From: Anaeramoeba ignava BMAN
Lineage: Eukaryota > Protista > Anaeramoebae
Assembly: GCA_028826165.1 (NCBI GenBank)
Contig: JAPDFW010000136.1
Location: forward strand, 868,001-932,000
DNA length: 64,000 nucleotides
Direction of reading: 5' to 3'
A program made the position numbers and the translations under genes. Each line of letters opens with the position of its first letter. Position 1 is the stretch's first letter. Below the pieces are notes generated by a model. The model searched no databases and had not been told where the DNA came from. It saw only the letters and a list, made by a program, of their open reading frames with translations. Positions 25,671 to 49,121 of the stretch are shown here, one piece after another.

Positions 25671-26159
25671 TTTTTTTTTTAATTTCTAAATAAATAATCA
25701 ACTTGATTAGATGAATCTTGATCTTATTGTTTAAACACATCTTTAAATAATTCATTTATCAAATTTTAAATAATTCATTTTCTAAGCTTTAAATAATTCA
25801 TTTATCAAATTTTAAAATTTATTTATCAAATTTTAAAATCTTTATTCATTTTTCATTTATTTAATTCAATTTTTTCATTTTAAACCAAAAAATTAAAACA
25901 AAGAAGAAAATCCAAAAATTTTAAGTGTGGGAAAAAGAACCAAATAAAAAGATAAAAAAATAAAAAGATAAAATTTAAAAGATAAAATTTAAAAGATAAA
26001 ATTTAAAAGATAAAATTTAAAAGATAAAAAAATAATCAGTGTTAAATTTTTTTTTTTTTTTTGGGGATCTCAATCAAAAATTTGAAGATTCATTTCTTTC
26101 TTTTGATTTTTTTTGTATTTTTTTTGTTTTTTTTTTTTTTTGATTTTTTTTTGTATAAA

Positions 26160-27646
26160 ATGATCAATTCAAAAAATGTTGGCAAAAAAAGGAAAGCCCA
26201 TTTTAAAATGGCAATAATTGGTGAAGAAAATGTGGGTCGAAAAACCATAATCTTGAGAGTTTGTGAAACAAAAGAAGTAGATAATAGGTTTGAAGAGTTG
26301 GGAAATCAATTTCAATTCAAGCAAATGAAAGGTCCTATTATTGATTTTACTTGGGAAATTTGGAAAGGACTTCCTGAACATTCAAGTTTGTTTTCAATAA
26401 ACCAAAAACAAATATAATATTATTAATATTGGATAATTTGGAAAAAAAAATTTTTACACTGATTGATTTTAAAGAATTTTTGCTTCATAAAAGAAAATTG
26501 ATTTAAATTGATCAACTAAAAACTAAAAACTAAAAACTAAAAACTAATAACAATGAATCTTATTTTTGAATTTTTTTTTTCTCATTAGATAATTTCAGAG
26601 GCGCAAATGGAATAATGATTGTTTATGATATCACAAATGAAAAATCTTTGACTAGAGTCAATTCTCTCTATCATAAATTGAGAGATTGGGAAAATGAAAA
26701 TGCTGAATTTGTTCTAATTGGAAATAAATGTGATTTGCAAAAGAAAAGAAAAATATCTTCTGAAAGGGGAAAAGCTCTTGCTGATGAATTGAAAATTCCC
26801 TTTTATGAAACATCAGCTAAAAAGGATATCAACCTCAAAGAGGCTTTCGATAATTTAATAATGAATTGTTTTGAAAGAAGTTTGCCTGACAAATTCATCA
26901 AGAACTTTGAAAACTTTTCATTGAGCGATGATTTGAGGCATTTATTAGAAAGAAAAGAGTTTTGTGATTTTGAAATTGAATGTCAAGATGACCGAAATCC
27001 ATTCAAGAAAATCACAATTCCAGTTCATAAATTAATCATCCAAACCAGATTGAAAATTAATGAAAATCAACTCAAAAACCAATTTTATTCCATTTTATAT
27101 CAAAATCCAAAAAAAAAAGTTGATGTTTTATTGAGATGGATTTATTATGGAAGAGTTTTGAATTCAAATTTGCTAATTTTTGAGGAATGGAAGAATAGAC
27201 TTTCAAATATTTCTACAGCCAATTTCAAAAAAGGAAAGAAGTATCTTGTTGAAGATTTAAAAAATCTAATGACACAAGAAGAAAATAAAGATTTTCAAAT
27301 CATTTCAAATGATCAAATTATTACTGTTCATAAGATAATCTTGATCGCAAGAAGTGAATTATTTAGAGGAATGTTTATGTATGTAACTGAAGATGAATCA
27401 AACCAAGTTCATGAATACAGTCATAAACAAACAGAAACTATGAAATCCTTGATTCATTTTTTTTATACTGATGAACTTCCTCAAACTAACAATCAAATAA
27501 TTTATCAAGAACTAAAGGAATTGCTTCTTTTTAATTTCTTTTTGTTTATTTTCAAATTTATCATGATAAAAGAAAATAAATTAATTGTTGAATTGTTTCA
27601 TTTGATTTTTTTGAATAATCATGAACTTGATTTGATGAATCATTAA
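26160..27646 (+). CDS. Degenerate Rab-like GTPase fused to two BTB domains, 2 exons; 3' end chimeric
   Basis: Exons 26160-26385 and 26589-27646 join in frame (HS|NNFRGANGIMIVYD). G4 GNKCD and G5 ETSAK present; BTB motifs DFEI..VHKLII and DFQI..VHKIILIARSELFRGMF. The last ~40 codons are antisense to an ANK-BTB gene end. Confidence 0.85.
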
Positions 27647-29794
27647 CATTTAATAAAAACATTCCTTTTTATATAATTCACTTCTTAATATTAATATTAA
27701 TTTATGAACTTTAATTTCTTTTTCATTCTGAAAAAATTATTGTAAAATCTTTTGTTTCATTTTGTTTGATATAATTTTGATAAATCTTCCCCCAATATTC
27801 CTTTTCTTCCTTTTTAGATTCAATCCAATTTGATCAAATCCAATTCTTTTTGAAAAATTTTTAATTTATTTTCTTTTTCATTTTCTTTTTTTTTTTGGAT
27901 TTTCATTTTTTTTTTTTTTGATTTTTCATAGTCAAAAAATCATCTGAATGAATTATGATTCTTAGATGATTGATGAATTTGATATTTTGTTTTTAATTTT
28001 TGTTTTTTCCAATCTTTTGTTTAATTTTGAAAAAAAATCTTCAAAATCAACAAATCCAGTATAAATGAAATTTAAAGCAATTTCAACTTCTTCTTTTGAT
28101 TTTTGTGAACAAATTTATTGATAAATTTTGATAAAATTGTTTCATTATTATCAAATCTTGTTAATAAAATTAATTTATGAACTTTGAATTTAAAAGAATC
28201 ATTTGATTGAATTTCAAAATCTGAAAAATTATCTTCATTTGATTTTAATAAATTGTTTAAATCTTGATTAATTGAATAAACTTGATTAATAAATTTCAAA
28301 AATTTTTGATAAATTAAAATTTTAATAAAAATCAAAAGGATTTGCATTATTCATTAATAATAAAAATTGAGCAACTTTTTCTTTTTGATCATTTCTGATT
28401 GCATAATATAAAGGAGTTTTATTTTTATTATTCTTGGTATCAACATCTGCTCCATTTTCAATGAGAAATTGAATAATTTCAATTGAATCACTTTTATTTT
28501 CATTTTGACAAATTAAATGCAAAGCATTTTCATTATTAATTGTGGTGGCATTGGCATTTGAACCTTTTGAAACAAGAAATTTGATAACTTCAAATGGATA
28601 TTTTTCATCACAAGCATAATGCAAAACTGTTTCTTGATCTTTGTTTTTGACATTGATATCTGCTCCTTTTGAAACAAGATATTTAATAGCTTCAAATAAA
28701 TTCTCATTTTTATTTGGATTAACAAAAAGAAAATGCAATAGAGTTTCTTTATAATTATTTTTGGCATTGATATCTGCTCCTTTTGAAACAAGATATTTAA
28801 TAATTTCAAGTAAATTTTCATTTTGACTTTGACAAATAAAATGAAAAAGTGTTTCTTTATAATTATTTTTGGCATTGATATCTGCTCCTTTTGAAACAAG
28901 AAATTGGATAATTTCAAATGAATTTTGATTTGGATTTTTACCAATTAAATGTAATGGAGTTTCTTTATAATAATTTTCAATATTAATATCTGCTCCTTTT
29001 TCAATGAAAAATTGAATAATTTCAAATAATTTTCAAAGAATTTTTATTTTGACTTTGACAAATTAAGTGTAATGGAGTTTCTTTATAATTATTTTTGGCA
29101 TTGATATCTGCTCCTTTTTCAATGAAAAATTGAATAATTTCAAATGAATTTTGATTTATATTTTTACAAATTAAATGTAAAATTGTTTCTTGATTTTCAT
29201 TTTTGGCATTGATATCTGCTTTTTTTGAAACAAGAAATTTAATAATTTCAAATGAATTTTCATTTATATTTTGCAAAGCAAAAGATGTAATGGAGGTTCT
29301 CTTTTTGAAACAAGAAATTAATAATTTCAAATGAATTTTGATTTAATTTTTACAAATTAAATGTAAATAAAGTTTTTTTTTTTTGTTTTTTATTTTGCAT
29401 TTTTGCTTTTTCAATTAAAATTTTTAATTTTTTTTTGAAGAAATTTAATAATGAAAAATGAATTTAATGATGTTTTCAATTTTTTTTGGCAAAATTAAAT
29501 TTAAAATTAAATCAAAAAATTTTAATTTTTGATAATTCTTTAAATTTTTATTTATTAATATAAAAATTTCCATTTGAAACAAAGAAATTTAATTTTAAAT
29601 TTCAATTTTTGAATTTTTCATTTTATTTTTGCAAATTAAAATAAATTGTTTTTAAATTTTTATTAAATTTTAAATTTCAAAAAAAATGAAAAATTAATTA
29701 ATTTTTAATTTTTTTAAATTAAATTAATTTTTTTAAATCAAAAATTTGATTTAATTAAAATCTTTTAATTTTTCTTTAAATTTTTTCTTCCCAT
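27522..29794 (-). pseudogene. ANK-BTB-BTB copy 1, multiply frameshifted and 3'-truncated
   Basis: ORF fragments 29022-29330, 28322-28738 and 28072-28347 carry GADIN/ETPLH and FKVHKLILLTRFDN motifs. Confidence 0.75.
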
Positions 29795-29830
29795 TTTTAT
29801 TTTCATTTTCAAATTTAAAATAAAGAAAAA

Positions 29831-32128
29831 TTAAAAATAAATTAAATCAATAATTGAATTTTGATTTAATTGATAATAATCTTTTAAATCTGAAAATTCT
29901 TCTTGAGTTTCTTTTGGAATTTCATTTTCAAATTTATCATGATAAAGAAAATAAATTAATTCTTGAATTGTTTTAAATGATTTTTTTGAATAATCATGAA
30001 CTTGATTTGATGAATCTTGAACATTTAATTGAAACATTCCTTTATATAATTCACTTCTTATTATTAATATTAATTTATGAACTTTAATTTCTTTTTCTTT
30101 TTCTTCTTTAATAATTGTAAAAATCTTTTGTTTCATTTTGTTGATATAATTTTGATAAATCTTCCAATATTCCTTTTCTTCCTTTTTTAGATTCAATCCA
30201 ATTTGAATCAAATCCAATTTCTTTGAAAAAATTTTTTTTTTATTTTTTTTCATTTTTTTCATTTTTTTTTTTTCATTTTTTTTTTATTTTTTCTGAAATT
30301 TTTGAATTTATTTCAAAAATTCAATTTTTTTTTTTCAAATTTGAAATTTTTGATTTTTTTTTTTTTTATAATTTTTTTTGATTTTTAATTTATAATTAAA
30401 TTTTTGTTTTTCAACTATTTTATTTTATCAATTTTTGAAGAAAATAATCAAAATTAGGAAAACCAGTATAAATGAAATTTAAAGCAATTTCAACTTCTTC
30501 TTTTGATTTTTGTGAACAAATTTCAATAAATTTTGATAAAATTGATTGATTATTATCAAATCTTGTTAATAAAATTAATTTATGAACTTTAAATTTAAAA
30601 GAATCATTTGATTGAATTTCAAAATCTGAAAAATTATCTTCATTTGATTTTAGTAAATTGTTTAAATCTTGAATAATTGAATAAATTTGTTTCAACATTT
30701 CAAAAACTTCTTTTGATAAATTATATTTCAATAAATCAAAAGGATTTGCATTATTCATTAATAAGAATTGAATTAATTTTTCATTTTTTCTTTGATTTTG
30801 AATACAAGTGAAAATTATTTTTTTTTTTTTGGCATTTGATATCTGTTCCTTTTGAAACAAGATTTCAAACAAAAACTGATTTAAAATTTTACAAATTAAA
30901 ATAAATTAAATTCTTTTGGATTTTTTTATTGATTTTTGACAAATTTTAAATGAAAAATTTTTGTTTCTTCATTTTTTTTTTTCATTAATATCTGCTCCTT
31001 TGAAAATAAATAAGATATTTTTTATTTGAAATTGAATCTGCACCATTTTGAAATGAGAAAAAATATTTTTCAATTTCATTTTGATTTTGATTTGATTTTG
31101 ACAAATTAAATGTAAAAGGTTTTTCTTGTTTAATATTTGTTTTGGCATTGATATCTGCTCCATTTTGAATTAAAAAATTTAATAATTTCAAATGAATTTT
31201 GATTTTTTTTTTTTTTTGACAAAATTAAATGTAAAAGGTTTTTTTTATATTTTTTTTTTTTGGCATTGATATCTGCTCCTTTTGAAACAAGAAATTGAAT
31301 AATTTCAAATGAATTTTTTGATTTTTTTGAATTTTGACAAATTAAAATGTAAAGAAGTTTGTTTTCATTTTATTTTTTGCATTAATATCTTTTCCTTTTC
31401 AAGAAAAAAATTTAATAAAAATCTTTAATTTTTTTTTTTGATTTTTTGACAAATTAAATGTAAAATGTGTTTTTCTTGATTAGAATTTTTGGCATTGATA
31501 TCTGCTCCGTTTTTGAAACAAGAATTTAAATTTTCAAATGTTTTTCATTTTTTGATTTTGACAAATTAAATGTAATGGTGAGTTTCTATTTTTTCATTTT
31601 TGGCATTAACATCTGCTCCTTTTTGAAACAAAAAAATTGAATCATTTCAAATAAATTTTCATTTTCATTTTTTTTATTTTTTTGACAAATTAAATAAAAT
31701 GATGTTTCTTCAAAAATTTTTTTCCAATTAATAATTTCAAATAAATTTGTAATTTGATTTTGACTTTGATTTTGACAAATTAAATGTAATGGTGTTTGTT
31801 TATAAGTTTTGTGTTTTGGCATTGATATCTGCTCCACCTTTTTCAATTAAAAATTTAATAATTTCAAATGAATTTTCATTTTGATTTTGACAAATTAAAT
31901 GTAAAGGGTTTTGCCTTCTTTTTTGTTTTGGCATTGATATATCTCTTTTTCCTTTTTAAAATTAAAAATTTTTTAATAATTTTTTTTGAATTTTCTGTTA
32001 AATTTTTATTTTGACAAATTAAATGTAAAATTGTTTCCTTGAAATTAAATTTTTGAAATTAATTTTTAATATCTTTAATTGAATTTTTCACAAGCAATAA
32101 ATTTTTTTTTTTGAATTTTTTGTCCCAT
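29831..32128 (-). pseudogene. ANK-BTB-BTB copy 2, heavily frameshifted
   Basis: Fragments 31586-31846, 30985-31191, 30420-30872 and 29831-30262; ATGGGACAA start at 32128. Confidence 0.75.
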
Positions 32129-32169
32129 TTTTATTTTTAAAAAAATGAAAAATGAAAAATGAAAAATTT

Positions 32170-32450
32170 AAAATTTTTTAAAAAATCAATAATTGAATTT
32201 TGATTTAATTGATAATAATCTTTTAAATCTGAAAAAATTCTTTTTTTTAATTTTTTTTTTTTTTTTCAAATTTATCATGATAAAGAAAATAAATTAATTG
32301 TTGAATTGTTTCATTTGATTTTTTTGAATAATCATGAACTTGATTTGATGAATCTCGAACATTTAATTGAAAAATTCCTTTATATAATTCACTTCTTAAT
32401 ATTAATATTAATTTATGAATTTTAATTTTTTTTTCTTCATAATAAAGAAA
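32170..32450 (-). pseudogene. Isolated C-terminal BTB fragment of the ANK-BTB family (copy 3)
   Basis: Matches the conserved HKLILILRSELYKG...DSSNQVHDYSKKSNETIQQL...DYYQLNQNSIID block. Confidence 0.7.
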
Positions 32451-32552
32451 ATAAATAATTTTAATTGTTTCAAATTTTTTTTTAATTTTTAAAAATTATT
32501 CAAAATAAAATAAATTTCCTTTAAAACATTTTAATAATAAAATAAAATTATA

Positions 32553-34512
32553 TTAAAATTTCTTTGAAAAGAAATTTGGGACAAAAAAAAAATTTTTGAT
32601 CTTGTAAGAAATAGGATATTTAGGTTCTTCAAATGTTTTTGGATTGAAATCATTAAAAATTAAATCAATTATGGAATTTTCGTTTAATTGATAATAATCT
32701 TTCAAATCATCAAATTCTTCATTAATTGTTGTTCCTTTATCAAATTTATCATGATAAAGAAAATAAACTAATTGTTTAATTGTTTCAAATGATTTCCCTG
32801 TATAATCATGAACTTGATTTGATGTGTCTTGGACATTTAATTGAAACATTGCTTTAAATAATTCACTTCTTGAAAATAATATTAATTTATGAACTTTAAT
32901 TTGTTTTTCAATTTGTTTTTCAATTTGTTTTTCAATTTGTTTTTGTTTTTCATTTTCATTTTCATTTAAATTTAAATTTTCGTTTTGATTTTGATTCCAT
33001 ATTATTGTAAAATCTTTTGTTGATTCTGCTTTATATAACTTATCTAAATCTTCCAATATTCCTTTTCTTCCTTGAATTTTTAATTGATTCCATTTTGATT
33101 TTAATCATCGCAAAATAAATTTTTGAACAGTTTTTTTTGATCTTTTATTTATTATTTTCTTTATAATTACTTTTTTTTCATTTTCAATTTTTTTGTTTTG
33201 AGTTACACTTGCAAGTTGATTGATAAATTTTTGTAATTGTTCAAAATCAGGAAATCCAGTATAAATGAAATTTAAAGCAATTTCAACATCTTCTTTTGAC
33301 TTTCGTTTACAGATATTGATAAATTTTTGTAAATTTGTTTCATTATTATCAAATCTTGTTAAAAAAATTAATTTATGAACTTGAAATTTGGAATAATCAT
33401 TTGATTGAATTTCTAAATCTGAAAAATTATCATTTGAATTTAATAAATTGTTTAAATCTTCAATAATTGAATAAATTGGAATCAATAAATCAATATTTCT
33501 TTTTGAAATTCGATCACTTTTTAAATCAAAAGGATCTGCATTATTTATTAATAAAATTTTGATAATTTTTTGATTTGGTTTTTGAGGTTCAATTAAAAAT
33601 GAAATAGGACTTTGTAGATAGTTATTTTTGGCATTAACATCTGCTCCATTTGAAATAAAAAATTGAATAATACCAAACGAATTTGTATTTTGATTTTTGC
33701 TTTGACAACTAAAATGAAAAGGTGTTTCTCTCTCTTTATTTTTGGCATTGATATCTGCACCTTTTGAAACAAGAAATTTGATAATTTCAAATGCATTTTG
33801 ATTTTTGTTTTGACAAATTGAATGTAACGCAGTTTGATAATTATGCTTTGTTTTGGCATTGATATCTGCTCCATTTAAAACAAGAAATTTGATAATTTCA
33901 AATTGAATTTTGATTGTGATGTTGATTTTGACAAATAAAATGTAAAGGAGTTTCTTCTTTTTCAGTTTTGGCATTAACATCTGCTCTTTTTGAAATGAGA
34001 AATTTAGTCATTTCAAGTGAATTTGTATTTATATTCTGACTTTGACAAATTAAATGTAAAACTGTTTCTTGATTTTTGTTTTTGGCATTAACATCTGCTC
34101 CTTTTTCAATGAGAAATTTAACAATTTCAATTAAAATTTGACTTCGATATTGATAAATTAAATGTAACGGAATTTGTTGATTATTCTTTATGTTGAGATT
34201 TAAATTCACTCTTTGGGGAGCCATAACACCAAGTTTAATTGAATTTTCGTTGATTCTTTTAAAAATTAAATGCAAAGAAGTTTCTTGATTGTTATTTTTG
34301 ACATTAATATCTGCTCCATTTGAAACAAGAAATTTAATAATTTGAAATGAATTTTCATTTAGATTTTGATTTTGACAAGCAATAAACAAAGGTGTTTCTC
34401 CATTTTCATTTTTGGGATTGAGATCTACTTTTTTTGAAATTAATTTTTGAATATCTTCAATTGAATTTTGTTCACAAGCAATAAATAATTTTTTTGAACT
34501 TGATTGACCCAT
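32553..34512 (-). CDS. ANK-BTB-BTB copy 4, two apparent frameshifts
   Basis: ORFs 33898-34512 (MGQSSS), 33105-33980 and 32553-33056 tile one gene. Confidence 0.75.
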
Positions 34513-34570
34513 TTATTTATTTTTTTATTTATGAAAAAAATGGAAAAATGAAAAAAATGAAAAAAAAATT

Positions 34571-36307
34571 CTAAATTAAATCTTTTAAAAATAAATCAAT
34601 TATTGAATTTTCATTTAATTGATAATAATCTTTCAAATCTTCAAATTCTTCAATCATTTTAGAATTAATTTTAGAATTAATTTCTTTTTCCTCATCGTGA
34701 TAAAGAAAATAGATTAATTGTTGAATTGTTTCATTTGATTTTTTTGAATAATCATGAACTTGATTTGATGAATCATTAACACTTAAAAACATTCCTTTAT
34801 ATACTTCACTTCTTAATATTAATATTAATTTATGGACTTTAATTTCTTTTTCTTCTGAAATAATAATTGTAAAATCTTTATTTTGATTTTCTTCATATAA
34901 TTTATGTAAATCTTCTAATATTCCTTTTCTTCCTTTTTTAGATTCAATCCAATTTGAATCAAATCCAATTTCTTTGAAAAATTCTTTTAATTTATTTTCT
35001 GAAGAACGTTCTTTTTTTTTTAAATCTTCTTTTTTTGTTGAAATTAATTGTTGTTCTTTTTTTGTTTTAGAATAAAATGAATCTGTTATTTTTTTTAAAA
35101 ATTCAATTTGTTGATTGAAAATTTCAAAATCAGGAAATCCAGTATAAATGAAATTTAAAGCAATTTCAACATCTTCTTTTGACTTTCGTTTACAGATATT
35201 GATAAATTTTTGTAAATTTGTTTGATTATTATCAAATCTTGTTAATAAAATTAATCTATGAACTTGAAATTTAAAAGAATCAATTGATTGAATTTCTAAA
35301 TCTGAAAAATTATCATTTGATTTTAATAAATTGATTAAATCTTGATTGATTGAATAAATTTGAATTAATAAATCAATAAATTCTTTTGGAAATAAATTTA
35401 TATTTGAATGGAAAAGATTTGCACCATTCAATAATAAAATCCTAATAACTTTTTGATTTTGATTTTGAATTGCAAGGGAAAGTGGAGTTTGATAGTATGA
35501 TGTTCGGGTATTTAAATTAGCTCCATTTAAAACAAGAAACTTAACAATCTCAAATGAATTTTCATTTTGGTTTTGGTTGTGGTTTTTACAAATTAAATGT
35601 AAAGGAGTTTCATTATAAAGCTTTGATTTTAAATTAATATTTGCACCATTTGAAACAAGATATTTGATAATTTCAAATGAATTTTGATTTCTATTTTGAT
35701 ATTCATTTTTACAAATTAGATGTAAAGCTGTTTCTTGATTTTTATCTTTTATATTAACACCTGTTCCATTTGAAACAAGATATTTGATAATTTCAATTGA
35801 GTATTCGTTTCTATTTTGATTTTGACAGACTAAATGTAATGGTGTTTGTTGCTTATTTCCTGTTTTTGAATTGATATCTGCACGTTTCGAAACAAGATAT
35901 TTAATAATTTCAACTGAATTCTCATTCGGATTTTCATTGCGACAAATTAAATGTAATGGATTTTCTTGAGTATATCCTGTTTTGACATTGATATCTGCTC
36001 CTTTCTCTGAAACAAGATATTGAATAATTTCAACTGAATATTGACTTTGATTTGAAATTTGACAAATTAAATGTAAAGGAGTTTCTTGATGTTTATTTTT
36101 GACATTAATACCTGCTCCATTTTCAATTAAAAGTTTAATAATTTGAAGCGAATTTTCATTTATATTTTGACAAATAATATGTAATGGAGTTTCTCCCTCA
36201 AAATTTGTAATATTGATATCAATTCTTTGTGAAATTAGTTTTTGAATATTTTCAAGTGAATTTTGTTCACAAAAAATAAATAATTTTTTTGAATTTGTTT
36301 GATCCAT
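34571..36307 (-). CDS. ANK-BTB-BTB copy 5, intact, 578 aa
   Basis: About 8 ankyrin repeats followed by two BTB domains. Confidence 0.92.
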   Translation of the reverse strand: MDQTNSKKLFIFCEQNSLENIQKLISQRIDINITNFEGETPLHIICQNINENSLQIIKLLIENGAGINVKNKHQETPLHLICQISNQSQYSVEIIQYLVSEKGADINVKTGYTQENPLHLICRNENPNENSVEIIKYLVSKRADINSKTGNKQQTPLHLVCQNQNRNEYSIEIIKYLVSNGTGVNIKDKNQETALHLICKNEYQNRNQNSFEIIKYLVSNGANINLKSKLYNETPLHLICKNHNQNQNENSFEIVKFLVLNGANLNTRTSYYQTPLSLAIQNQNQKVIRILLLNGANLFHSNINLFPKEFIDLLIQIYSINQDLINLLKSNDNFSDLEIQSIDSFKFQVHRLILLTRFDNNQTNLQKFINICKRKSKEDVEIALNFIYTGFPDFEIFNQQIEFLKKITDSFYSKTKKEQQLISTKKEDLKKKERSSENKLKEFFKEIGFDSNWIESKKGRKGILEDLHKLYEENQNKDFTIIISEEKEIKVHKLILILRSEVYKGMFLSVNDSSNQVHDYSKKSNETIQQLIYFLYHDEEKEINSKINSKMIEEFEDLKDYYQLNENSIIDLFLKDLI

Positions 36308-36345
36308 TTATTTATTTTTGAAAATGAAAAATGAAAAATGAATTT
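36308..36345 (-). promoter_or_regulatory. 38-nt conserved intergenic element (TAA-AAATTCATTTTTCATTTTTCATTTTCAAAAATAAATAA-ATG); putative 3'-processing signal plus Inr-like promoter
   Basis: The same element lies at 34513-34570, 40094-40146, 41566-41606, 43830-43866, 45565-45599 and 46841-46877. Function is inferred. Confidence 0.55.
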
Positions 36346-39300: not shown

Positions 39301-40093
39301 CTCCTGATTCAATCATTAATTTCATAACTTCAATAGATTTTTGATATTTGCAAACAAAATGAAAAGATGATTCATTAAGAATATTTGTTCTATTGATATC
39401 TGCTCCTTTTGAAATAAGATACTGAATAATTTCAAATGCATTTTGATCCTGTTGATATTTGCAAGCAAAATGTAATGCTGTTTGTTTTGTATCAAATGTT
39501 TGTGTGTTTAGCTCAACACCTTTCTCAACAAGATATTTAACAATTTTGAATGAATTTTGGTTTTTTTGATATTGGCAAACATAATGCAATAGTGTTTTGT
39601 TATTAAATGTTTTTGCTTTTAAATCAATTCCTAAATCCACAAGATATTTGATAATTTCAAATGAGTCTTTTTTTGTTTGATTTTCGCAAACAAAATGTAA
39701 TAATGTTTCGTTGAAATTTGTTTTTGGATTTATATCTGCTCCTTTTTCAATAAGATATTTAGTCATTTCAAGTGTATTTTTGTTTTGTTTTCTCAAAAAT
39801 AAATGCAGTATTGTTTCATTATCAGTTGTTTTGTTATTCAAATTAACTCCTTTATCAATAAGAAACTGAATTATTTCTAAAGATGAATTGTTTATAATTG
39901 CAAAATGTAATGAGTTTCTTCCTTTTTGATCTTTTAAATTTGGATTTATTCCTGTTGAAATTAAATATTCAATAATTTCTTTTGAGGCTTTTTTTTCTAT
40001 TGCAAAATTTAACAATTTGGTTTTTGAAACGAAATTAATTTGTTTTAATTTTTCGATATTATTTTCTTCAATAATTTTATAAATAAAATTCAT
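36346..40093 (-). CDS. ANK-BTB-BTB copy 6, more than 25 ankyrin repeats, one frameshift near 38845
   Basis: ORFs 38831-40093 and 36346-38916 overlap and switch frame inside one ankyrin repeat (TPLHF / LACQN). Confidence 0.85.
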
Positions 40094-40146
40094 TTTATTT
40101 AAATTATTTTTGAAAATGAAAAAAATGAAAAATGAAAAATGAATTT

Positions 40147-41565
40147 TTAATTTAAATCTTTCAAAATTAAATCAATTATTGAATTTTGATTTAATTGATA
40201 ATAATCTTTTAAATCATAAAATTCTTCTTTTTTAATTTCTTTTTCTTTTTCAAATTTATCATGATAAAGAAAATAAATTAATTGTTGAATTGTTTCATTT
40301 GATTTTTTTGAATAATCATGAACTTGATTTGATGAATCTTGAACACTTAAAAACATTCCTTTATATAATTCACTTCTTATTATTAATATTAATTTATGAA
40401 CTTTAATTTCTTTTTCTTCTGAAATAATAATTGTAAAATCTTTAGTTTGATTTTCTTGATATAATTTATGTAAATCTTCTAATATTCCTTTTCTTCCTTT
40501 TTTAGTTTCAATCCAATTTGATTCAATTTCAATTTCTTTGAAAAATTCTTTTAATTTATCTTCTTTTTCTTGATTTTCTTTATTCAAATATTCTATTTCT
40601 TTAGCAATATCATTTTGTGAATTAAATTTTAAATGGTATTTGTTAATTTGTTTATTAAATTTATCAAAATCAACAAATCCAGTATAAATGAAATTTAAAG
40701 CAATTTCAACATTTTCTTTTGGTTTTGTTTTACAAATATTGATAAATTTTTGTAAATTTGTTTCATTATTATCAAATCTTGTTAATAAAATTAATTTATG
40801 AACTTGAAATTTGGAATAATCAATTGATTGAATTGTTAAATCTGAAAAATTATCATTTGATTTTAATAAATTGTTTAAATCATCATTGATTGAATAAATT
40901 TGAATCAATACCTCAATAATTTCTTTTGTGAAACAATCGCTTGTTAGATTAGAAATATCTGCATTATTCATTAATAAAAATTTTATTATTTTTTGATAAG
41001 TATATTTACAAGCAAAAAATAATGGGGTTTGATTTATATCATTTCTGGCATTTATATCTGTTCCATTTTCAATAAGAAATTTAATAATATTAAGGGGACA
41101 TCGATGTTGACAAGCATAATGTAAAGGAGTTTCTTGCTCTTCTGTTTTGGAATTAATATCTGCTCCATTTTCAATTAAATATTTAATAATTTGAAGTGAT
41201 TTTTGATAAAGACAGGCTAAATGTAATGGAGTTTCTTGAAATGATTTTTTTGAATTAACATCTGCTCCATTTTCAATTAAATATTTAATAATTTCAATTG
41301 AATTTTGTGAAGAGTTTTGACAACAATAATGTAAAGGAGTTGCTTGATAATTATTTTTTGCATTAATATCTGCTCCATTTTCAATTAAATATTTAATAAT
41401 TTGAAGTGAATTTTTATTTATATTTTGACAAATTAAATGTAAAGGTGTTTCTTGTTTAATATTTTTCTCATTAACATCAATTCCACTTTCAATTAATTTT
41501 TTAATATTTTTAATTGAATTTTTTTCACAAGCAATAAATAATTTTTTTGAATTTGTTTGTCCCAT
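40147..41565 (-). CDS. ANK-BTB-BTB copy 7, intact, 472 aa
   Basis: MGQTNS start, about 5-6 ankyrin repeats, two BTB domains. Confidence 0.92.
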   Translation of the reverse strand: MGQTNSKKLFIACEKNSIKNIKKLIESGIDVNEKNIKQETPLHLICQNINKNSLQIIKYLIENGADINAKNNYQATPLHYCCQNSSQNSIEIIKYLIENGADVNSKKSFQETPLHLACLYQKSLQIIKYLIENGADINSKTEEQETPLHYACQHRCPLNIIKFLIENGTDINARNDINQTPLFFACKYTYQKIIKFLLMNNADISNLTSDCFTKEIIEVLIQIYSINDDLNNLLKSNDNFSDLTIQSIDYSKFQVHKLILLTRFDNNETNLQKFINICKTKPKENVEIALNFIYTGFVDFDKFNKQINKYHLKFNSQNDIAKEIEYLNKENQEKEDKLKEFFKEIEIESNWIETKKGRKGILEDLHKLYQENQTKDFTIIISEEKEIKVHKLILIIRSELYKGMFLSVQDSSNQVHDYSKKSNETIQQLIYFLYHDKFEKEKEIKKEEFYDLKDYYQLNQNSIIDLILKDLN

Positions 41566-41606
41566 TTATTTTTGAAAATGAAAAATGAAAAATGAAAAAT
41601 GAATTT

Positions 41607-43829
41607 TTAATTTAAATCTTTTAAAATTAAATCAATTATTGAATTTTGATTTAATTGATAATAATCTTTTAAATCATAAAATTCTTCTTTTTTAATTTCT
41701 TTTTCTTTATCAAATTTATCATGATAAAGAAAATGGATTAATTGTTGAATTGTTTCATTTGATTTTTTTGAATAATCATGAACTTGATTTGATGAATCAT
41801 TAACACTTAAAAACATTCCTTTATATAATTCACTTCTTAATATTAATATTAATTTATGAACTTTGATTTCTTTTTCTTCTGAAATAATAATTGTAAAATC
41901 TTTAGTTTCATTTTCTTGATATAATTTATGTAAATCTTCTAATATTCCTTTTCTTCCTTTTTTAATTTCAATCCAATTTGATTCAATTCCAATTTCTTTG
42001 AAAAATTCTTTTAATTTATCTTCTTTTTCTTCAAATTTTTCTTTTTCTCTCTTTTCATTTTCATCTTCAAGATCTGATCTGGAAAATCGAAAATCTGAAG
42101 AAGGGTCTGAGTCAAGTAAGGATTCTGATAACATTTTTCTTTTCTTTTCTTTTTCTGTTTGATTTTCTTTTTTCAGTATTCTCTGTTTTTTTTTTTCAAC
42201 TTTCTCTTTTAATATTTGATAAAATTTATCAAAATCAACAAATCCAGTATAAATGAAATTTAAAGCAATTTCAACATCTTCTTTTGGTTTTATTTTACAG
42301 ATATTGATAAATTTTTGTAAATTTGTTTCATTATTATCAAATCTTGTTAATAAAATTAATTTATGAACTTGAAATTTAAAAGAATCAATTGATTGAATTT
42401 TTAAATCTGAAAAATTATCATTTGATTTTAATAAATTGTTTAAATCATCATTGATTGAATAAATGGAAACTATTGAATTAAGAATTTCTTTGGAAAATTT
42501 ATATCCTTTTAAAAAAAAAGAATTTGTCATGTGCATTAATAAAAATAGAATAAGTTTTGGGTTATTATTATCAATTATAAGTGAAAGTGGAGTTTGAAAA
42601 TTTTTATTTTTAGCATAAATATCCAATCCTTGTGAAACAAAAAATTTGATAATTTCAAGTGAATATTGATTTGGATTTCTATTATGACTTTGACAAGCTA
42701 AATGCAAAACTGTTTCTTCCTCTTTGTTTTTGTCATTAATATCTGCACCTTTTGAAATAAGATATTTAATAATTTCAAATGTATTTTCATTTTTTTGACT
42801 TTGATATTGACAAATCAAATGTAATGGTTTTTCTTGACTAATATTTGTAGCATTGATATCTGCTCCATTTTCTATTAAGACTTTAATAATTTGAAGTGAA
42901 TTTTGATGTTGATATCTACAAGCTGAATGTAAAGGTGTTTCTTTATATTTCTTTGTTTTTGCATTTAAATCTGCTCCTTTTGAAATTAACAATTCAATAA
43001 CTTCACTTAAATTTCTTTTGCAAATAATATGTAAAGATGTTTCATTTTCATTATTTGGATAATTAATTGAAATTCCAGATTCAAGAAAAAAATTAATTAT
43101 TTCAATTAAAATCTTTATTTCTTCTTTTCCATTTTGTTGTTCAGTTTTACAAATCTCATGTAAAAGTGTTTCTTGATATGAATTTTTGGCATTGATATCT
43201 GCTCCTTTTGAAATAAGATATTTAATAATTTCAAATGTTTTTTCATTTAGAAATTGACAAACATAAAACAATGGTGTTGCTTTATTGTGGTTTTTGGCAT
43301 TAACATCTACTCCTTTTTCAACAAAAAATTTGATAATTTCAAATAAATTCTCATTTTGAAATTGACAAGCAATGTGTAAATATGTATCTTCATTTTTGTT
43401 TCTGGCATTGATATCTGCACCTTTTTCAATAAGAAATTTAGCAATTTCAAATACATTTGCATTTTTATTTTGGCAAATTAAATGTAATGGAGTTTCTTCA
43501 AAAAAATTTTTAGCATTAATATCTGCACCTTTTTCAATAAGAAATTTAACAATCTCAAATATATTTACATTTTTATTTTGACAAATTAAATGTAAAGGTG
43601 TTTGTTTATAAGTTTGTGTTTTAGCATTAATATCTGCTCCTTTTTCAATTAAAAGTTTAATAATTTGAAGTGAATTTTTATTTGTATTTTTACAAGCAAA
43701 ATGTAAAGGAGTTTCTTCATTTTCATCTTTTAAATTAACATCAATTCCATTTTCAATTAATTTTTTAATATTTTTAATTGAATTTTTTTCACAAGCAATA
43801 AATAATTTTTTTGAATTTGTTTGTCCCAT
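41607..43829 (-). CDS. ANK-BTB-BTB copy 8, intact, 740 aa
   Basis: MGQTNS start, about 12 ankyrin repeats, two BTB domains. Confidence 0.92.
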   Translation of the reverse strand: MGQTNSKKLFIACEKNSIKNIKKLIENGIDVNLKDENEETPLHFACKNTNKNSLQIIKLLIEKGADINAKTQTYKQTPLHLICQNKNVNIFEIVKFLIEKGADINAKNFFEETPLHLICQNKNANVFEIAKFLIEKGADINARNKNEDTYLHIACQFQNENLFEIIKFFVEKGVDVNAKNHNKATPLFYVCQFLNEKTFEIIKYLISKGADINAKNSYQETLLHEICKTEQQNGKEEIKILIEIINFFLESGISINYPNNENETSLHIICKRNLSEVIELLISKGADLNAKTKKYKETPLHSACRYQHQNSLQIIKVLIENGADINATNISQEKPLHLICQYQSQKNENTFEIIKYLISKGADINDKNKEEETVLHLACQSHNRNPNQYSLEIIKFFVSQGLDIYAKNKNFQTPLSLIIDNNNPKLILFLLMHMTNSFFLKGYKFSKEILNSIVSIYSINDDLNNLLKSNDNFSDLKIQSIDSFKFQVHKLILLTRFDNNETNLQKFINICKIKPKEDVEIALNFIYTGFVDFDKFYQILKEKVEKKKQRILKKENQTEKEKKRKMLSESLLDSDPSSDFRFSRSDLEDENEKREKEKFEEKEDKLKEFFKEIGIESNWIEIKKGRKGILEDLHKLYQENETKDFTIIISEEKEIKVHKLILILRSELYKGMFLSVNDSSNQVHDYSKKSNETIQQLIHFLYHDKFDKEKEIKKEEFYDLKDYYQLNQNSIIDLILKDLN

Positions 43830-43866
43830 TTATTTATGAAAAAAATGAAAAATGAAAAATAAAAAT

Positions 43867-45564
43867 TTAATTTAAATCTTTTAAAATTAAATCAATTATT
43901 GAATTTTGATTTAATTGATAATAATCTTTTAAATCATAAAATTCTTCTTTTTAATTTCTTTTTCTTTATCAAATTTATCATGATAAAAGAAATGGATTAA
44001 TTGTTGAATTGTTTCATTTGATTTTTTTGAATAATCATGAACTTGATTTGATGAATCTTGAATATTTAAAAACATTCCTTTATATAATTCACTTCTTAAT
44101 ATTAATATTAATTTATGAACTTTAATTTCTTTTTCTTCTGAAATAATAATTGTAAAATCTTTGGTTTTATTTCCTTGATATAATTTATGTAAATCTTCTA
44201 ATATTCCTTTTCTTCCTTTTTTAGATTCAATCCAATTTAAATCTATCCAAATTTCTTGAAATATTTTGATAAGTGTTGCTTTTTTGGTTTGTCTTTGATT
44301 TTCATTTTGAATTTGATATAAATAATCTAAATTATCTGATTGGAAAAAAAAATCATAATCTTCATCAGGTTTTGATTTCTTTGGATCTTTAATTTGTTGA
44401 ATAAATTTATCAAAATCAGGAAATCCAGTATAAATGAAATTTAAAGCAATTTCAATATCTCTTTTTGATTTTGTTTTACAAATATTGATAAATTCTTGTA
44501 AAATTGCTTCATCATTATCAAATCTTGTTAATAAAATTAATTTATGAACTTTAAATTGAGAAGAATCAATTGATTGAATTGTTAAATCTGAAAAATTATC
44601 ATTTGATTTTAATAAATTGTTTAAATCATCATTGATTGAATAAACGTGAAGCAAAAAATCAATAATTTTTTGAGAGAAATCATCAGATGGTATATCAAAA
44701 GGATTTGCATTATTCATTAATAAAAATTGAACAGCTTTTTCTTTCATTTTTTCGTTTTGATTTTGATAAATCAAATTTAAAGGTGTTTCTTGTTTTTTAT
44801 TCTTGATATTCACATCTGCTCCATTTAAAACAAGAAATTTGATTGTTTCAAATAAATTTTCATTGATATCTTTACTTTTACAAAGAATATGTAAAGATGT
44901 TTCTTGATAATTATTTGTTAAATTAGGATCTCCTTTTTTCTCAATTAGAAAATGAATTATTTTATTTGAATTTATATTTTTATGATATTTTTGACAAATC
45001 AAATATAAAGGTGTTTCTTGTTTATTATTTTTGAAATTCACATCTGCTCCATTTGAAACAAGAATGTTAATAGTATCAATTGATTTTTCATTTGTATTTT
45101 TACAAGCAAAATGTAAAGGAGTTTCTTGAAATTTATTTTTGGCATTGGCATATGCACCTTTTGAAATGAGAAAATTCATAGTTTCAATTGATCTTTCTTT
45201 CATTGTTTGACAAATATAATGTAAAGGAGTTTCTTGGTTTTCATTTCTGGCATTGACATCTGCTCCTTTTTCAATTAAATTTAATAATTTCAATTGAATT
45301 TTCACTTAATATACGACAAATATAATGTAATGGAGCTTCTTGATATTTATTTTTGGCATTTACATCTGCTCCTTTTTCAATTAAGAATTTAATAATTTCA
45401 AATGAAAATTGATTTTGATCGTTACAAATAAAATGTAAAATTGTTTCTTCATTTTCATCTTTTAAATTCAAATCAATTCCTTTTTCAATTAATTTTTCAA
45501 TATCTTTAATTGAATTTTTTTCACAAGCAATAAGTAATTTTTCTTTTGAATTTGTTTGTCCCAT
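43867..45564 (-). CDS. ANK-BTB-BTB copy 9, frameshifts near 45280 and 43950
   Basis: ORFs 45271-45564 and 43929-45305, plus the conserved terminus ending KDLN* at 43867. Confidence 0.8.
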
Positions 45565-45599
45565 TTATTTATGAAAAAAATGAAAAATGAAAAAAAAAT

Positions 45600-46840
45600 T
45601 TAATTTAAATCTTTTCAAAATTAAATCAATTATTGAATTTTGATTTAATTGATAATAATCTTTTAAATCATAAAATTCTTCTTTTTTAATTTCTTTTTCT
45701 TTATCAAATTCATCATGATAAAAGAAATGAATTAATTGTTGAATTGTTTCATTTGATTTTTTTGAATAATCATGAACTTGATTTGATGAATCTTGAGCAT
45801 TTAAAAACATTCCTTTATATAATTCACTTCTTAATATTAATATTAATTTATGAACTTTAATTTCTTTTTCTTCTTCAGTAATAATTGTAAAATCTTTATT
45901 TTGATTTTCTTGATATAATTTATGTAAATCTTCTAATATTCCTTTTCTTCCTTTTTTAGATTCAATCCAATTTGATTCAATTCCAATTTCTTTGAAAAAT
46001 TCTTTTAGTTTATCTTCTTTTTCTTGATTTTCATGCGTAATTCGATACAAATACTTTTCATCATCTGAACAAAAAGAATCATAATCTTCATCATCAGGTT
46101 TTAATTTTGCTCGGTCTTTAATTTGTTGAATAAATTTATCAAAATCAGGAAATCCAGTATAAATGAAATTTTAAAGCAATTTCAACATTTTCTTTTGATT
46201 TTGTTTTACAAATATTGATAAATTTTTGTAAAATTGTTTCATCATTATCAAATCTTGTTAATAAAATTAATTTATGAACTTTAAATTGAGAAGAATCAAT
46301 TGATTGAATTGTTAAATCTGAAAAATTATCATTTGATTTTAATAAATTGTTCAAATCATCATTGATTGAATAAATTTGACTGAATAAATCAATAAATTCT
46401 TTTGAAAAATAGTTAATTGATAAATCAAAAGGATTTGCATTATTCATTAATAAAAAATGAATAATTTTTTGATCATTTTCTTCTAAAGCAAAGAATAAAG
46501 GAGTTTCTTCATTTTTGTTTTTGGAATTAATATCAGCACCTTTTTCAATTAAATATTTAAGTATTTCAATTGAATTTTCATTTGGATATTGGCAAATTAA
46601 ATGGAAAGGAGTTTCTTTATATTTGTTTTTGGAATTAATATCTGCTCCTTTTTCAATTAAATATTTAATAATTTCAAGTGAATTTTTATTTGTATTTTTG
46701 CAAGCAAAATGTAAAGGTGTTTCTTCATTTTCATTTTTGAAATTCACATCTGCTCCTTTTGAAATATGAAATTTAGTTTCTTTAATTGAATTTTTTTCAC
46801 AAGAAAGGAATAATTTTTTTGTTGAAGCATCTTGTCCCAT
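45600..46840 (-). CDS. ANK-BTB-BTB copy 10, about 3 ankyrin repeats, homopolymer frameshifts
   Basis: ORFs 46145-46840 (MGQDAS) and 45565-46050; extra bases near 46170 and 45615. Confidence 0.8.
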
Positions 46841-46877
46841 TTATTTATGAAAAAAATGAAAAATGAAAAAAAAAAAT

Positions 46878-49121
46878 TTAATTTAAATCTTCTAAAATTA
46901 AATCAATTATGGAATTTTGATTTAATTGATAAAAATCTTTTAAATCTTTAAATTCTTCTTTTTTAATTTCTTTTTCTTTATCAAATTCATCATGATAAAA
47001 GAAATGGATTAATTGTTGAATTGTTTCATTTGATTTTTTTGAATAATCATGAACTTGATTTGATGAATCTTGAACATTTAAAAACATTCCTTTAAATAAT
47101 TCACTTCTTAATATTAATATTAATTTATGAACTTTAATTTCTTTTTCTTCTGAAATAATAATTGTAAAATCTTTATTTTGATTTTCTTGATATAATTTAT
47201 GTAAATCTTCTAATATTCCTTTTCTTCCTTTTTTAGATTCAATCCAATTTGATTCAATTCCAATTTCTTTGAAAAATTCTTTTAGTTTATCTTCTTTTTT
47301 TTGGATATCTGTAATTTTTTCAATTTGTGGTTTAGTTTTTTGATCATATGAAAAATAATCGAAAAAATCAAAAATTGGTTTTCTGGATTTTCTTTGGATT
47401 TCATTTTTTCGCATATTTTGATTTAACTGTTGAATAAATTCTTTAAAATCAGGAAATCCAGTATAAATGAAGTTTAAAGCAATTTCAACATATTTTTTTG
47501 ATTTTTGAGAACAAATATTGATAAATTTTTGTAAAATTGTTTCATTATTATCAAATCTTGTTAATAAAATTAATTTATGAACTTTAAATTTAAAAGAGTT
47601 GTTTGATTGAATTGTTAAATCTGAAAAATTATCATTTGATTTTAATAAATTATTTAAATCATCATTGATTGAATAAACGTGAATAAATACATTAACAAAT
47701 TTTTCTGTAATTACATCTTTTTTTAAATTAATATTTGCGTGATTGATTAATAAAAGTTGAATTTTGTTGATATCACCGTTTTTGATTGAATATGAAAGAG
47801 GAGTTTCTTGATAATAATTCTGAGCATTAACATCAGCTCCATTTCGGATAAGTAGCTTGATTACTTCAATGTTATCATTATAGCAAGCCAAATGTAAAGC
47901 TGTTTCATTTTGGTTGTTTTTGGCATTAATATCAATTCCGTTGTCAATCAAGTATTTGACAACTTGATTTGAGCATTGCTTGTTTTGGACGACCAAATGC
48001 AAAGCTGTTCTGTTTCCAGCAGTTTTTGCATGAATATCAACTCCTTGAGAAATGAGGTATTGGATAACTTCGACTGTATTGTTTTGGCAAGCGATATGCA
48101 AGACTGTTTGATTTTCATTTATTGCTGCATTGATATCAGCTCCTTTTGAAAGTAAGTAATGGATAACTTCAACTGTATTATTTTGGCAAGCAAAATGCAA
48201 AATGGTTTCGTTTCCATATTTGGTTTTGGAATTCATATCCACTCCCTTTTCAATCAAATACTGGATCACTTCAAGTGAATTACTTTTGCAAGCATAATGC
48301 AAAATGGTTTGATTATCTTTTGTTTTTTCGTGAATATCAAGACCTAATGAGATGAGAAAATCAATCACTTTGACTGAGTTATTTTGGCAAGCAAAATGCA
48401 ATGCTGTTTGGTCTTCAGATGTTTTCCCGTTGATATATGCACCTTTATTAATGAGATATTTGATGACATCGATTGAACCATTTTGACAAGCAAATTGGAA
48501 AGGTGATTGAATCCATGCAATGCTTGGATTGATATCAGCACCTTTTGAAAGCAAGAATTTGATCAATGGGAATGAATTATTTTGACAGGCAATATGTAAA
48601 GGTGTTTTATTTTCTTTTGTTTTTGCATTCACATTTGCTCCTTTTTCAACTAACAAACTAATTAATCGAAGTGGTTGATTTTTAATGCAGGCAATATGCA
48701 AAATTGTTTCTCCACTCGATATTTTTGTTGAGTTTGTATTAAATCCTTGTGAAATCAAATACTCAATCACCTCAAGTTTTTTCTCACTTTTCAAATGATT
48801 CATTGAATAATCAAATGCTTCATAATTATTTTTTTCATTTGGAGAAAATTTCAAAATTTGCTTAATTAAATATTTGATAACTTCAATTTCTGAATCCTTT
48901 ATAATTGCATAATGCAGAGAATTCCGTTTTGATTTATCAACTGATTTTGGATTGACTCCTTTTGAAATGAGTAATTTGATCATTTCTTTTGAAGAGTTAT
49001 TTTCAATTGCAAAATGTAAAATGGGTTGTTCTTCACTTTCTTCAATTTCAATTTGTGGAATAAATTCAATTTCTTTAAGCCATTCAATATCATTTTCTTC
49101 AATAACTTGATAAATTTCCAT
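46878..49121 (-). CDS. ANK-BTB-BTB copy 11, intact; likely start MEIYQVIEEN at 49121
   Basis: About 13 ankyrin repeats and two BTB domains; N-terminus resembles copy 6 (MNFIYKIIEENN). Confidence 0.88.
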   Translation of the reverse strand: MEIYQVIEENDIEWLKEIEFIPQIEIEESEEQPILHFAIENNSSKEMIKLLISKGVNPKSVDKSKRNSLHYAIIKDSEIEVIKYLIKQILKFSPNEKNNYEAFDYSMNHLKSEKKLEVIEYLISQGFNTNSTKISSGETILHIACIKNQPLRLISLLVEKGANVNAKTKENKTPLHIACQNNSFPLIKFLLSKGADINPSIAWIQSPFQFACQNGSIDVIKYLINKGAYINGKTSEDQTALHFACQNNSVKVIDFLISLGLDIHEKTKDNQTILHYACKSNSLEVIQYLIEKGVDMNSKTKYGNETILHFACQNNTVEVIHYLLSKGADINAAINENQTVLHIACQNNTVEVIQYLISQGVDIHAKTAGNRTALHLVVQNKQCSNQVVKYLIDNGIDINAKNNQNETALHLACYNDNIEVIKLLIRNGADVNAQNYYQETPLSYSIKNGDINKIQLLLINHANINLKKDVITEKFVNVFIHVYSINDDLNNLLKSNDNFSDLTIQSNNSFKFKVHKLILLTRFDNNETILQKFINICSQKSKKYVEIALNFIYTGFPDFKEFIQQLNQNMRKNEIQRKSRKPIFDFFDYFSYDQKTKPQIEKITDIQKKEDKLKEFFKEIGIESNWIESKKGRKGILEDLHKLYQENQNKDFTIIISEEKEIKVHKLILILRSELFKGMFLNVQDSSNQVHDYSKKSNETIQQLIHFFYHDEFDKEKEIKKEEFKDLKDFYQLNQNSIIDLILEDLN

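Follow-up and report, generated by a model that had tools for sequence, protein, structure and literature searches.

A large, apparently Anaeramoeba ignava-specific family of ankyrin-BTB-BTB genes with evidence for array-wise homogenization of the double-BTB module, and its putative role in Cullin-3 substrate adaptation

Proteins with N-terminal ankyrin repeats followed by two tandem BTB domains are represented by Schizosaccharomyces pombe Btb3p and human ABTB1 (BPOZ), and Btb3p binds the Cul3 homologue Pcu3p in a manner that requires both BTB domains (Stogios 2005, PMC1257465). These proteins have approximately two ankyrin repeats along with a helical C-terminal region of approximately 300 residues, and they are encoded by one or few genes. 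Here, we analyzed a 64,000-nucleotide (nt) window of the Anaeramoeba ignava BMAN genome (assembly GCA_028826165.1, contig JAPDFW010000136.1, positions 868,001 to 932,000), in which an array of 11 ankyrin-BTB-BTB copies occupies window positions 27560 to 49121 on the minus strand, head to tail and devoid of introns. In contrast to Btb3p and ABTB1, the array genes carry 4 to 26 repeats, lack the C-terminal region, have a hypervariable linker between the two BTB domains, and belong to a family of approximately 400 copies. The explanation that we favor, with moderate confidence, is that the locus is one array of a large, apparently A. ignava-specific family in which a constant double-BTB module is homogenized by recombination, and whose products are putative substrate adaptors of Cullin-3-RING ligases (CRL3).

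Adjacent BTB domains are also found in RhoBTB proteins, where an intramolecular dimer has been proposed, the more typical of the two BTBs is the second, and Cul3 is a partner (PMC1257465). The array genes resemble them in having adjacent BTBs arranged as an intramolecular dimer, here in a predicted model only, and the neighboring gene at 26615 to 27646 carries a Ras-family domain on the same kind of module. Nevertheless, the array genes have no GTPase domain, whereas RhoBTB proteins have a C-terminal tail and bind Cul3 through the first BTB. Moreover, RhoBTB proteins have their insertion between A2 and B3 of BTB1, whereas in the array genes the variable segment comes after FIYTGF, where A3 ends. 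In the ESM Atlas, the whole module was structurally closest to RCC1-BTB proteins (template modeling [TM] score of 0.70 over 225 residues; RCBTB/IBtk-like) and LZTR1 (TM score of 0.66 over 240 residues), which form small families with other substrate-binding domains (RCC1 and Kelch) and, in LZTR1, BACK domains. A constant BTB joined to a variable substrate-binding part, amplified in particular lineages, is characteristic of the MATH-BTB genes of Caenorhabditis elegans and grasses (for the expansions, PMC1257465). The array family differs from them in its binding domain, its variable length, its double BTB, and its several-fold higher copy number. For MATH-BTB families, it has been proposed that the MATH domain is under positive selection and that the proteins have a role in targeting pathogens, whereas positive selection was not detected here (119 pairs of ankyrin units under the Goldman-Yang codon model GY94-F61). 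Ankyrin repeats and a cullin-ligase adaptor domain are also combined, in immunity or host manipulation, in plant NPR1 (BTB-ankyrin) and in poxvirus ankyrin/PRANC proteins; these differ from the array genes in domain order or in the adaptor domain, which is F-box-like in poxviruses, and they have no tandem BTB. The locus belongs to a lineage-specific expansion of probable BTB adaptors built on the known ankyrin-BTB-BTB architecture.

A tblastn search with the 277-amino-acid (aa) C-terminal module of the 472-aa copy c5 returned 11 minus-strand double-BTB copies between positions 27570 and 47756, numbered c1 to c11 from 5′ to 3′ along the minus strand (Table 1). The initial annotation of this sequence had described about 11 head-to-tail intronless ankyrin-BTB-BTB genes with about 3 to more than 25 repeats, and both statements agree with what was found, the measured range being approximately 4 to 26 units per copy. 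The region has a G+C content of approximately 20% and long minus-strand open reading frames (ORFs). Pfam searches identified ankyrin repeats in all ORFs and a C-terminal BTB wherever an ORF extends to the BTB block; in c4, c5, and c6, the BTB matches form two stretches. The proposed layout of variable ankyrin parts and constant BTB tails is real, but the intact copies make up only about half of the array: c1, c4, c5, and c7 as assembled and c6 after a one-base correction (5 of 11). Copies c2 and c3 have one or two frameshifts each, and c8 to c11 (4 of 11) are degraded.

The copies are mosaics of constant and variable segments. Among c1 to c7, the mean pairwise DNA identity was 92.5% in BTB1 and 93.6% in BTB2, compared with 69% in the junction preceding BTB1 and 59% in the inter-BTB linker. 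The BTB blocks had been called nearly identical; the pairwise values range from 86 to 98% and do not amount to identity. The near base identity reported for the EDKLKEFF...ILKDLN segment in copies 6, 7, and 8, which correspond to c6, c5, and c4, was recovered, with 97.3 to 98.1% DNA identity in BTB2. A comparison in sliding 60-nt windows bore out the mosaic: the best match in the other local copies was 97 to 100% for the BTB blocks and 60 to 93% for the ankyrin parts, with approximately 58% expected by chance for windows of matched composition.

The BTB blocks were further compared between this array and ten other A. ignava arrays. BTB identity was 91 to 99% within an array and 83.5 to 85.8% between arrays, codon identity at identical residues was 0.94 to 0.96 within arrays and 0.88 to 0.94 between arrays, and the pairwise omega (dN/dS) of the BTB blocks was 0.15 to 0.40. 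Since unlinked copies are still 83.5 to 85.8% identical, most of the BTB identity is attributable to purifying selection and extreme codon bias. The array-specific excess amounts to approximately 8 points, and recent whole-gene duplication does not explain this component.

In a tree of BTB1 plus BTB2, each array formed one clade, except for two near-duplicate arrays that intermixed, and the array label changed 12 times on the tree, compared with a minimum of 10 and with 32 for shuffled labels. Two kinds of N-terminal cap, one short (often with an MG start) and one long (..IY.IIEEN.IE.LK..), occur in many arrays, and monophyly of the 11 long-cap genes was rejected (log-likelihood difference [delta lnL] of 510; approximately unbiased test, p-AU 1.8e-11). 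The pairwise homoplasy index (PHI) test detected recombination with nine copies (p<0.0005) and with c1 to c7 (p 0.011). The distances between copies in BTB1 and BTB2 conflict: between c7 and c8 the difference is 5.5% for BTB1 versus 23.5% for BTB2 (p=1.5e-9), and between c1 and c2 it is 8.5% for BTB1 versus 2.5% for BTB2 (p 0.0014). For the same gene pairs, the neutral distance under a codon model was 0.2 to 1.2 in the BTBs versus 3.4 to 79 in the best-matched ankyrin units, the latter values being inflated where reciprocal-best units are not orthologous. Moreover, two genes on opposite strands of another contig (C75:342001-352000, L018) are 98.2% identical in BTB2 and 89.6% in BTB1, with ankyrin arrays at background identity. 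Because the BTB clades, the cap conflict, the PHI test, the distance conflicts, the neutral distances, and the C75 pair point together to array-wise homogenization, the conclusion that BTB modules are homogenized among neighbors by gene conversion or unequal crossing-over is supported. The idea of homogenized BTB cassettes holds at the level of array-wise clades and the PHI test, but a large part of the identity is attributable to codon bias and purifying selection. As a separate observation, the inverted C75 pair is a clean candidate for a gene-conversion tract.

Next, the fold of the module was predicted. The AlphaFold2 model, based on a 49-sequence alignment, has a mean predicted local distance difference test (pLDDT) score of 90.7 and a predicted TM score (pTM) of 0.90, and the module matches PF00651 at 60.5 bits (cut-off, 20.5) in two stretches. 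The predicted BTB2 has a complete BTB core and, N-terminal to it, a helical extension, and it superposes on the SPOP BTB from its Cul3 complex with a Z score of 12.7 and a root mean square deviation of 2.6 Å over 112 residues. The family profile matches the BTBs of KBTBD4, KBTBD2, and SPOP (E values of 2e-10 to 1e-5), and BTB1 gave a weaker match, to the CP190 BTB at an E value of 1e-5. As a whole, the predicted module superposes on the tethered single-chain Miz1-BCL6 BTB heterodimer 4u2m_D (Z score of 14.1, 212 residues, 4.2 Å), and a chordate Ank-BTB cluster in the Atlas reached a feature match of only 0.78. The V-x-D motif of the family aligns with L-K-E of KBTBD4, with the D retained in at least 90% of the 49 sequences. 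The genome contains at least eight cullin loci; the best solved relative of the locus on contig C58 is Cul3 (401 bits versus 343 for Cul4), and the remaining cullin loci tested are Cul4-like or Cul1/2-like. Judged from the fold, the V-x-D motif, and the Cul3-like gene, a Cullin-3 adaptor role is plausible. Homology to SPOP and KBTBD BTBs is in line with the adaptor role suggested in the initial annotation, but the 3-box/BACK region is lacking.

In the explanation that we favor, each protein starts with an N-terminal cap, continues with an ankyrin solenoid whose length varies, and ends in a double BTB. Neighboring BTB blocks are kept alike by gene conversion or unequal crossing-over in addition to purifying selection, the ankyrin arrays and the inter-BTB linker diverge freely, and several copies have decayed. 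According to the model, the two BTBs may be packed against each other as an intramolecular pseudo-dimer. Of the two, BTB2 is more similar to the SPOP and KBTBD BTBs and would recruit the Cullin-3-like protein of the genome, and the ankyrin surface would select the substrate, so that each copy would be a monomeric CRL3 adaptor with its own target. Copies that start with MGQ(T/S)xSKK are probably N-myristoylated and membrane associated, and the genome has two N-myristoyltransferase loci. With their tails kept alike, all copies would stay compatible with one ligase core.

Several observations weigh against this explanation. Besides the possible inflation of the ankyrin distances, the boundaries of identity coincide with domain boundaries in every pair, a pattern that differing constraint alone would produce, and polishing with multi-mapped short reads could have raised BTB identity by a few percent. 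Regarding the Cullin-3 role, the predicted BTB1 has B1, B2, and A1 to A3 but lacks strand B3, and the hypervariable linker (pLDDT of 75 to 88) contains the last BTB1 helices. The motif in BTB2 is V-x-D rather than the Cul3-contacting phi-x-E, with a near-invariant D at the E position. Finally, the ORFs end directly after the last BTB2 helix (...IIDLILKDLN, stop) and include no 3-box/BACK, which strengthens Cul3 binding in SPOP and KLHL adaptors.

A role independent of Cullin-3 is the main functional rival, in which the double BTB would be a structural or oligomerization module of membrane- or cytoskeleton-associated ankyrin scaffolds. The missing 3-box/BACK, the V-x-D motif, and the degenerate BTB1 all fit such a module, as does the closest structural match to the whole module, which is a BTB dimer of the transcription-factor type. 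It also draws on the myristoylation-type N termini of several copies: c2 to c5 and c8 start with MGQ(T/S/D)xS(K/T)K (at 46840, 45564, 43829, 41565, and 34512), an N-myristoylation-type motif, whereas c7 (start at 36307) reads MDQTNSKK and has therefore lost Gly2 of the motif. Nevertheless, BTB2 is closest in both sequence and structure to the proven Cul3 adaptors KBTBD4, KBTBD2, and SPOP, the genome has a Cul3-like gene, and the tandem-BTB architectures that match are themselves Cul3 adaptors (LZTR1/RCC1-BTB, TM scores of 0.66 to 0.70; RhoBTB/Btb3p, PMC1257465). We consider the scaffold alternative unlikely.

The double-BTB module is found far beyond this array. A first look at the 42.8-Mb assembly to which the window belongs gave 2306 candidates, and all 140 that were scored had E values of <1e-30, 57 to 83% identity, and open frames of 233 to 2684 aa. 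An 18-nt conserved BTB2 motif had 410 matches in the genome versus 9 for the reversed control, and a 21-nt BTB1 motif had 361 versus 5 in the control. With approximately 360 to 410 modules genome-wide, in many arrays, the array studied here is therefore one among many and not a self-contained local system. Across the family, the number of ankyrin repeats ranges from 0 to >50, and the protein matches carry the name Anaeramoeba ignava. A. flamelloides yielded only distant relatives of the module (37 to 44% identity), one of which found one further close relative. Since this word-based search gave only distant relatives, the expansion looks specific to the A. ignava lineage, and on present sequence comparisons the family appears to be specific to A. 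ignava. Elsewhere in Anaeramoeba, Rab-like, RCC1, Sel1, G-alpha, EF-hand, and Kelch parts are likewise followed by this module. Neither ankyrin, BTB, nor ubiquitin is mentioned in the main text of the genome paper (PMC11550330), and the available parts of its supplements contain only incidental rows and no expression values for family members. None of the sequencing runs that contain the stretch, all of them from two samples, is registered as RNA.

Regarding the genomic placement of the family, many copies are located within 40 kb of a contig start or close to a contig end, and this window is 22 to 43 kb from the end of its contig; this could reflect subtelomeric arrays or only assembly breaks at repeats. 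The two arrays that intermix on the BTB tree, on contigs C48 and C144 (L010-L013), have ankyrin units that are 97 to 98% identical between them, which points to two haplotype contigs or to a segmental duplication of recent date.

To describe the ankyrin surface, a 35-state unit model was used, which recovered 962 ankyrin units, 792 of them well filled, from 11 arrays. The units fit the T-(A/P)-L-H and G-x-D-I-N signature, with Pfam Ank_2/Ank E values down to 1e-129. Variability peaks at positions 4 and 5, at the hairpin tip, and is also high at positions 15 to 19; we take positions 4 and 5 to be equivalent to the randomized positions 2 and 3 of designed ankyrin proteins. Selection was estimated on 119 reciprocal-best unit pairs between different ORFs. 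The Nei-Gojobori method (NG86) gave a pN/pS of 0.52 overall and of 1.9 at position 5, an estimate that is inflated because of AT bias. The converged GY94-F61 model gave an omega of 1.01 at position 5 (2 delta lnL of 0.0 against an omega of 1), values of ≤0.56 at all other positions, and 0.02 to 0.16 at the most conserved framework positions, so that the NG86 value was rejected as a sign of positive selection. Once AT and codon bias were modeled, the ankyrin surface gave no sign of positive selection, a model-dependent result for these 119 pairs. The loop tip is unconstrained and evolves at about the neutral rate, so the diversifying selection that the initial annotation would predict is not shown.

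As for exchange between ankyrin arrays, the units of this array are 79.4% identical within the array versus 78.0% to other arrays, a difference of +1.5 points in size-matched samples, whereas younger arrays show +7 to +14 points within the array. Young arrays lie on contigs C106, C86, and C102. These size-matched samples replaced a comparison of the best within-array match with the best other-array match, which was biased by pool size. No recent ankyrin exchange or intragenic duplication was found in this array, where the best same-gene match is approximately 76%. The recombination-driven repertoire proposed in the initial annotation keeps its recombination (PHI p<0.0005, array clades, and p-AU 1.8e-11) but not a recent local reshuffling of ankyrin repeats.

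These results bear on the proposal that the genes form a germline repertoire of ubiquitin-targeting receptors against symbiont, prey, or viral proteins, with a diversifying ankyrin surface and with BTB cassettes as crossover points. Several features are in keeping with it, including the very high and apparently species-specific copy number, the decayed copies within tandem arrays, the range of 0 to >50 repeats, and the recombination detected between copies. Furthermore, variability peaks at the canonical target-binding ankyrin positions (hidden Markov model positions 4 and 5 and 15 to 17), the loop-tip position is the least constrained, and A. ignava keeps bacterial symbionts (PMC11550330). 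However, the codon-frequency-aware omega is 1.01 at the loop tip and exceeds 1 at no position, the NG86 value of 1.9 being an effect of AT bias; the local ankyrin arrays show neither recent exchange nor intragenic duplication; and A. flamelloides, which also keeps symbionts, had no such expansion in the searches made. We hold such a repertoire to be quite improbable. The same low credence applies to its wider form, in which the approximately 400 adaptors would be a fast-turning germline repertoire marking foreign proteins for ubiquitylation, new specificities would arise through repeat gain and loss plus loop-tip changes, and the tails would be kept Cullin-3 compatible by gene conversion; in that case, the family would be the protist equivalent of expanded immune receptor families.

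The assembly was checked against contigs from four public sequencing runs (two samples), compared over positions 38000 to 43900. In each run, a contig spanning the ORF overlap of c6 has one letter fewer than the window, at 38846, and scripted removal of one base near this position gave a single 1248-aa c6 frame, the joined protein being predicted only. Because the run contigs lack the surplus base, c6 is regarded as an intact gene. Since the assembly has indel errors, the frameshifts of c2 and c3 are not certain, and similar errors may underlie further frameshifts in this AT-rich assembly. In the unique linker and ankyrin segments, the run contigs agreed with the window without differences, and the BTB blocks appeared as short, very deep contigs, as expected of multi-copy sequence. 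Assembly collapse was ruled out, given that the copies differ by 2 to 14% and have unique linkers and ankyrin arrays, with the unique parts matched exactly by short-read contigs.

It is very unlikely that gene conversion played no part and that the identity reflects recent whole-gene duplication, purifying selection, codon bias, or an assembly or polishing artifact: unlinked copies are indeed already 84 to 86% identical (between-array codon identity at identical residues of 0.88 to 0.94), identity boundaries do coincide with domain boundaries, and the array contains at least one assembly indel error, but the same gene pairs are saturated at neutral ankyrin sites and not in their BTB parts, BTB1 and BTB2 relationships conflict, cap types common to several arrays do not track the BTB tree, the inverted C75 pair combines 98% BTB2 identity with unrelated ankyrin arrays, and the 2 to 14% copy differences with graded array-specific variants argue against collapse.

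The features of the array are listed in Table 1.

Table 1. Positions of the array copies and associated features in the window
Feature	Position	Strand	Description
c1	46878-49121	-	Intact, 747-797 aa; long type-B N-terminal cap, ~12 ankyrin units, BTB1, 67-aa linker, BTB2
c2	~45600-46840	-	Short copy, start MGQDASTKK, ~4 ankyrin units, frameshifted
c3	43870-45564	-	Start MGQTNSKE; two frameshifts, in the ankyrin part and near the BTB2 end
c4	41607-43829	-	Intact, 740 aa; start MGQTNSKK, ~11 ankyrin units, 86-aa linker
c5	40147-41565	-	Intact, 472 aa; start MGQTNSKK, ~6 ankyrin units; copy used for the structure model
BTB1 block of c5	40675-40899	-	IYSINDDL...FIYTGF; example of the first constant block
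BTB2 block of c5	40150-40563	-	EDKLKEFF...ILKDLN, with V-x-D motif and NQVHDYS; example of the second constant block
c6	36346-40093	-	Type-B cap, ~26 ankyrin units; two overlapping ORFs as assembled
Surplus assembly base	~38846		Short A run in c6; absent from contigs of four sequencing runs
c7	34571-36307	-	Intact, 578 aa; start MDQTNSKK
c8	32553-34512	-	Start MGQSSSKK; frameshift near 33908; in-frame stop ahead of BTB2
c9	32179-32438	-	BTB2-only fragment, two frames
c10	29831-32052	-	Degraded, heavily frameshifted; ankyrin units across three frames; BTB1 and BTB2 remnants in different frames
c11	27560-29390	-	Degraded, heavily frameshifted; ~seven ankyrin units in one frame; module split across three frames
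Ras-family-BTB gene	26615-27646	+	C-terminal half of a Ras-family GTPase plus double BTB, 35% identical to the array module

Several copies have further individual features. The ORF of c1 continues to 49271 across a T-rich spacer, and the frame of c2 is broken by single-base indels in homopolymer runs, within BTB1 and close to the 3′ end. Copies c8 and c7 share 94.7% identity in BTB1, while in BTB2 c8 is approximately 83% identical to its neighbors, which is the between-array level. The c8 BTB2 (32553 to 33056) also has an N/E/Q-rich repeat insert (…EKQIEKQIEKQI…). Introns or microexons were ruled out as the cause of the broken frames of c8, c10, and c11, as the ankyrin units are contiguous and merely change frame. 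From 34513 to 46877, the genes are separated by spacers of 37 to 58 nt, each with two to four copies of TCATTTT(T) and with a terminal ATAA immediately ahead of the ATG; these spacers are conserved as a component of the duplicated unit.

On one side, the array lies tail to tail with the Ras-family-BTB gene, which shares the module and is not a member of the array. This neighbor has a RhoBTB-like architecture, and it may extend to 26061-26417, the N-terminal half of the GTPase being outside the ORF at 26615 to 27646. Directly upstream of the array, a 1810-aa minus-strand ORF (49240 to 54672) encodes a PSME4/PA200-type proteasome activator (Pfam E value of 4e-65) with a long (NQ)n run; its adjacency to the array is probably a coincidence.

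What is new is that the ankyrin-BTB-BTB architecture has been amplified to approximately 400 modules in 42.8 Mb and that the BTB tails of an array evolve concertedly. The family represents a natural set of ankyrin binders, akin to designed ones, that share one constant scaffold, and the predicted intramolecular BTB pseudo-dimer is open to structural testing. If the proteins are adaptors, they would rank among the largest known expansions of substrate receptors outside plants and nematodes, and this in an organism with a biology centered on housing bacteria.

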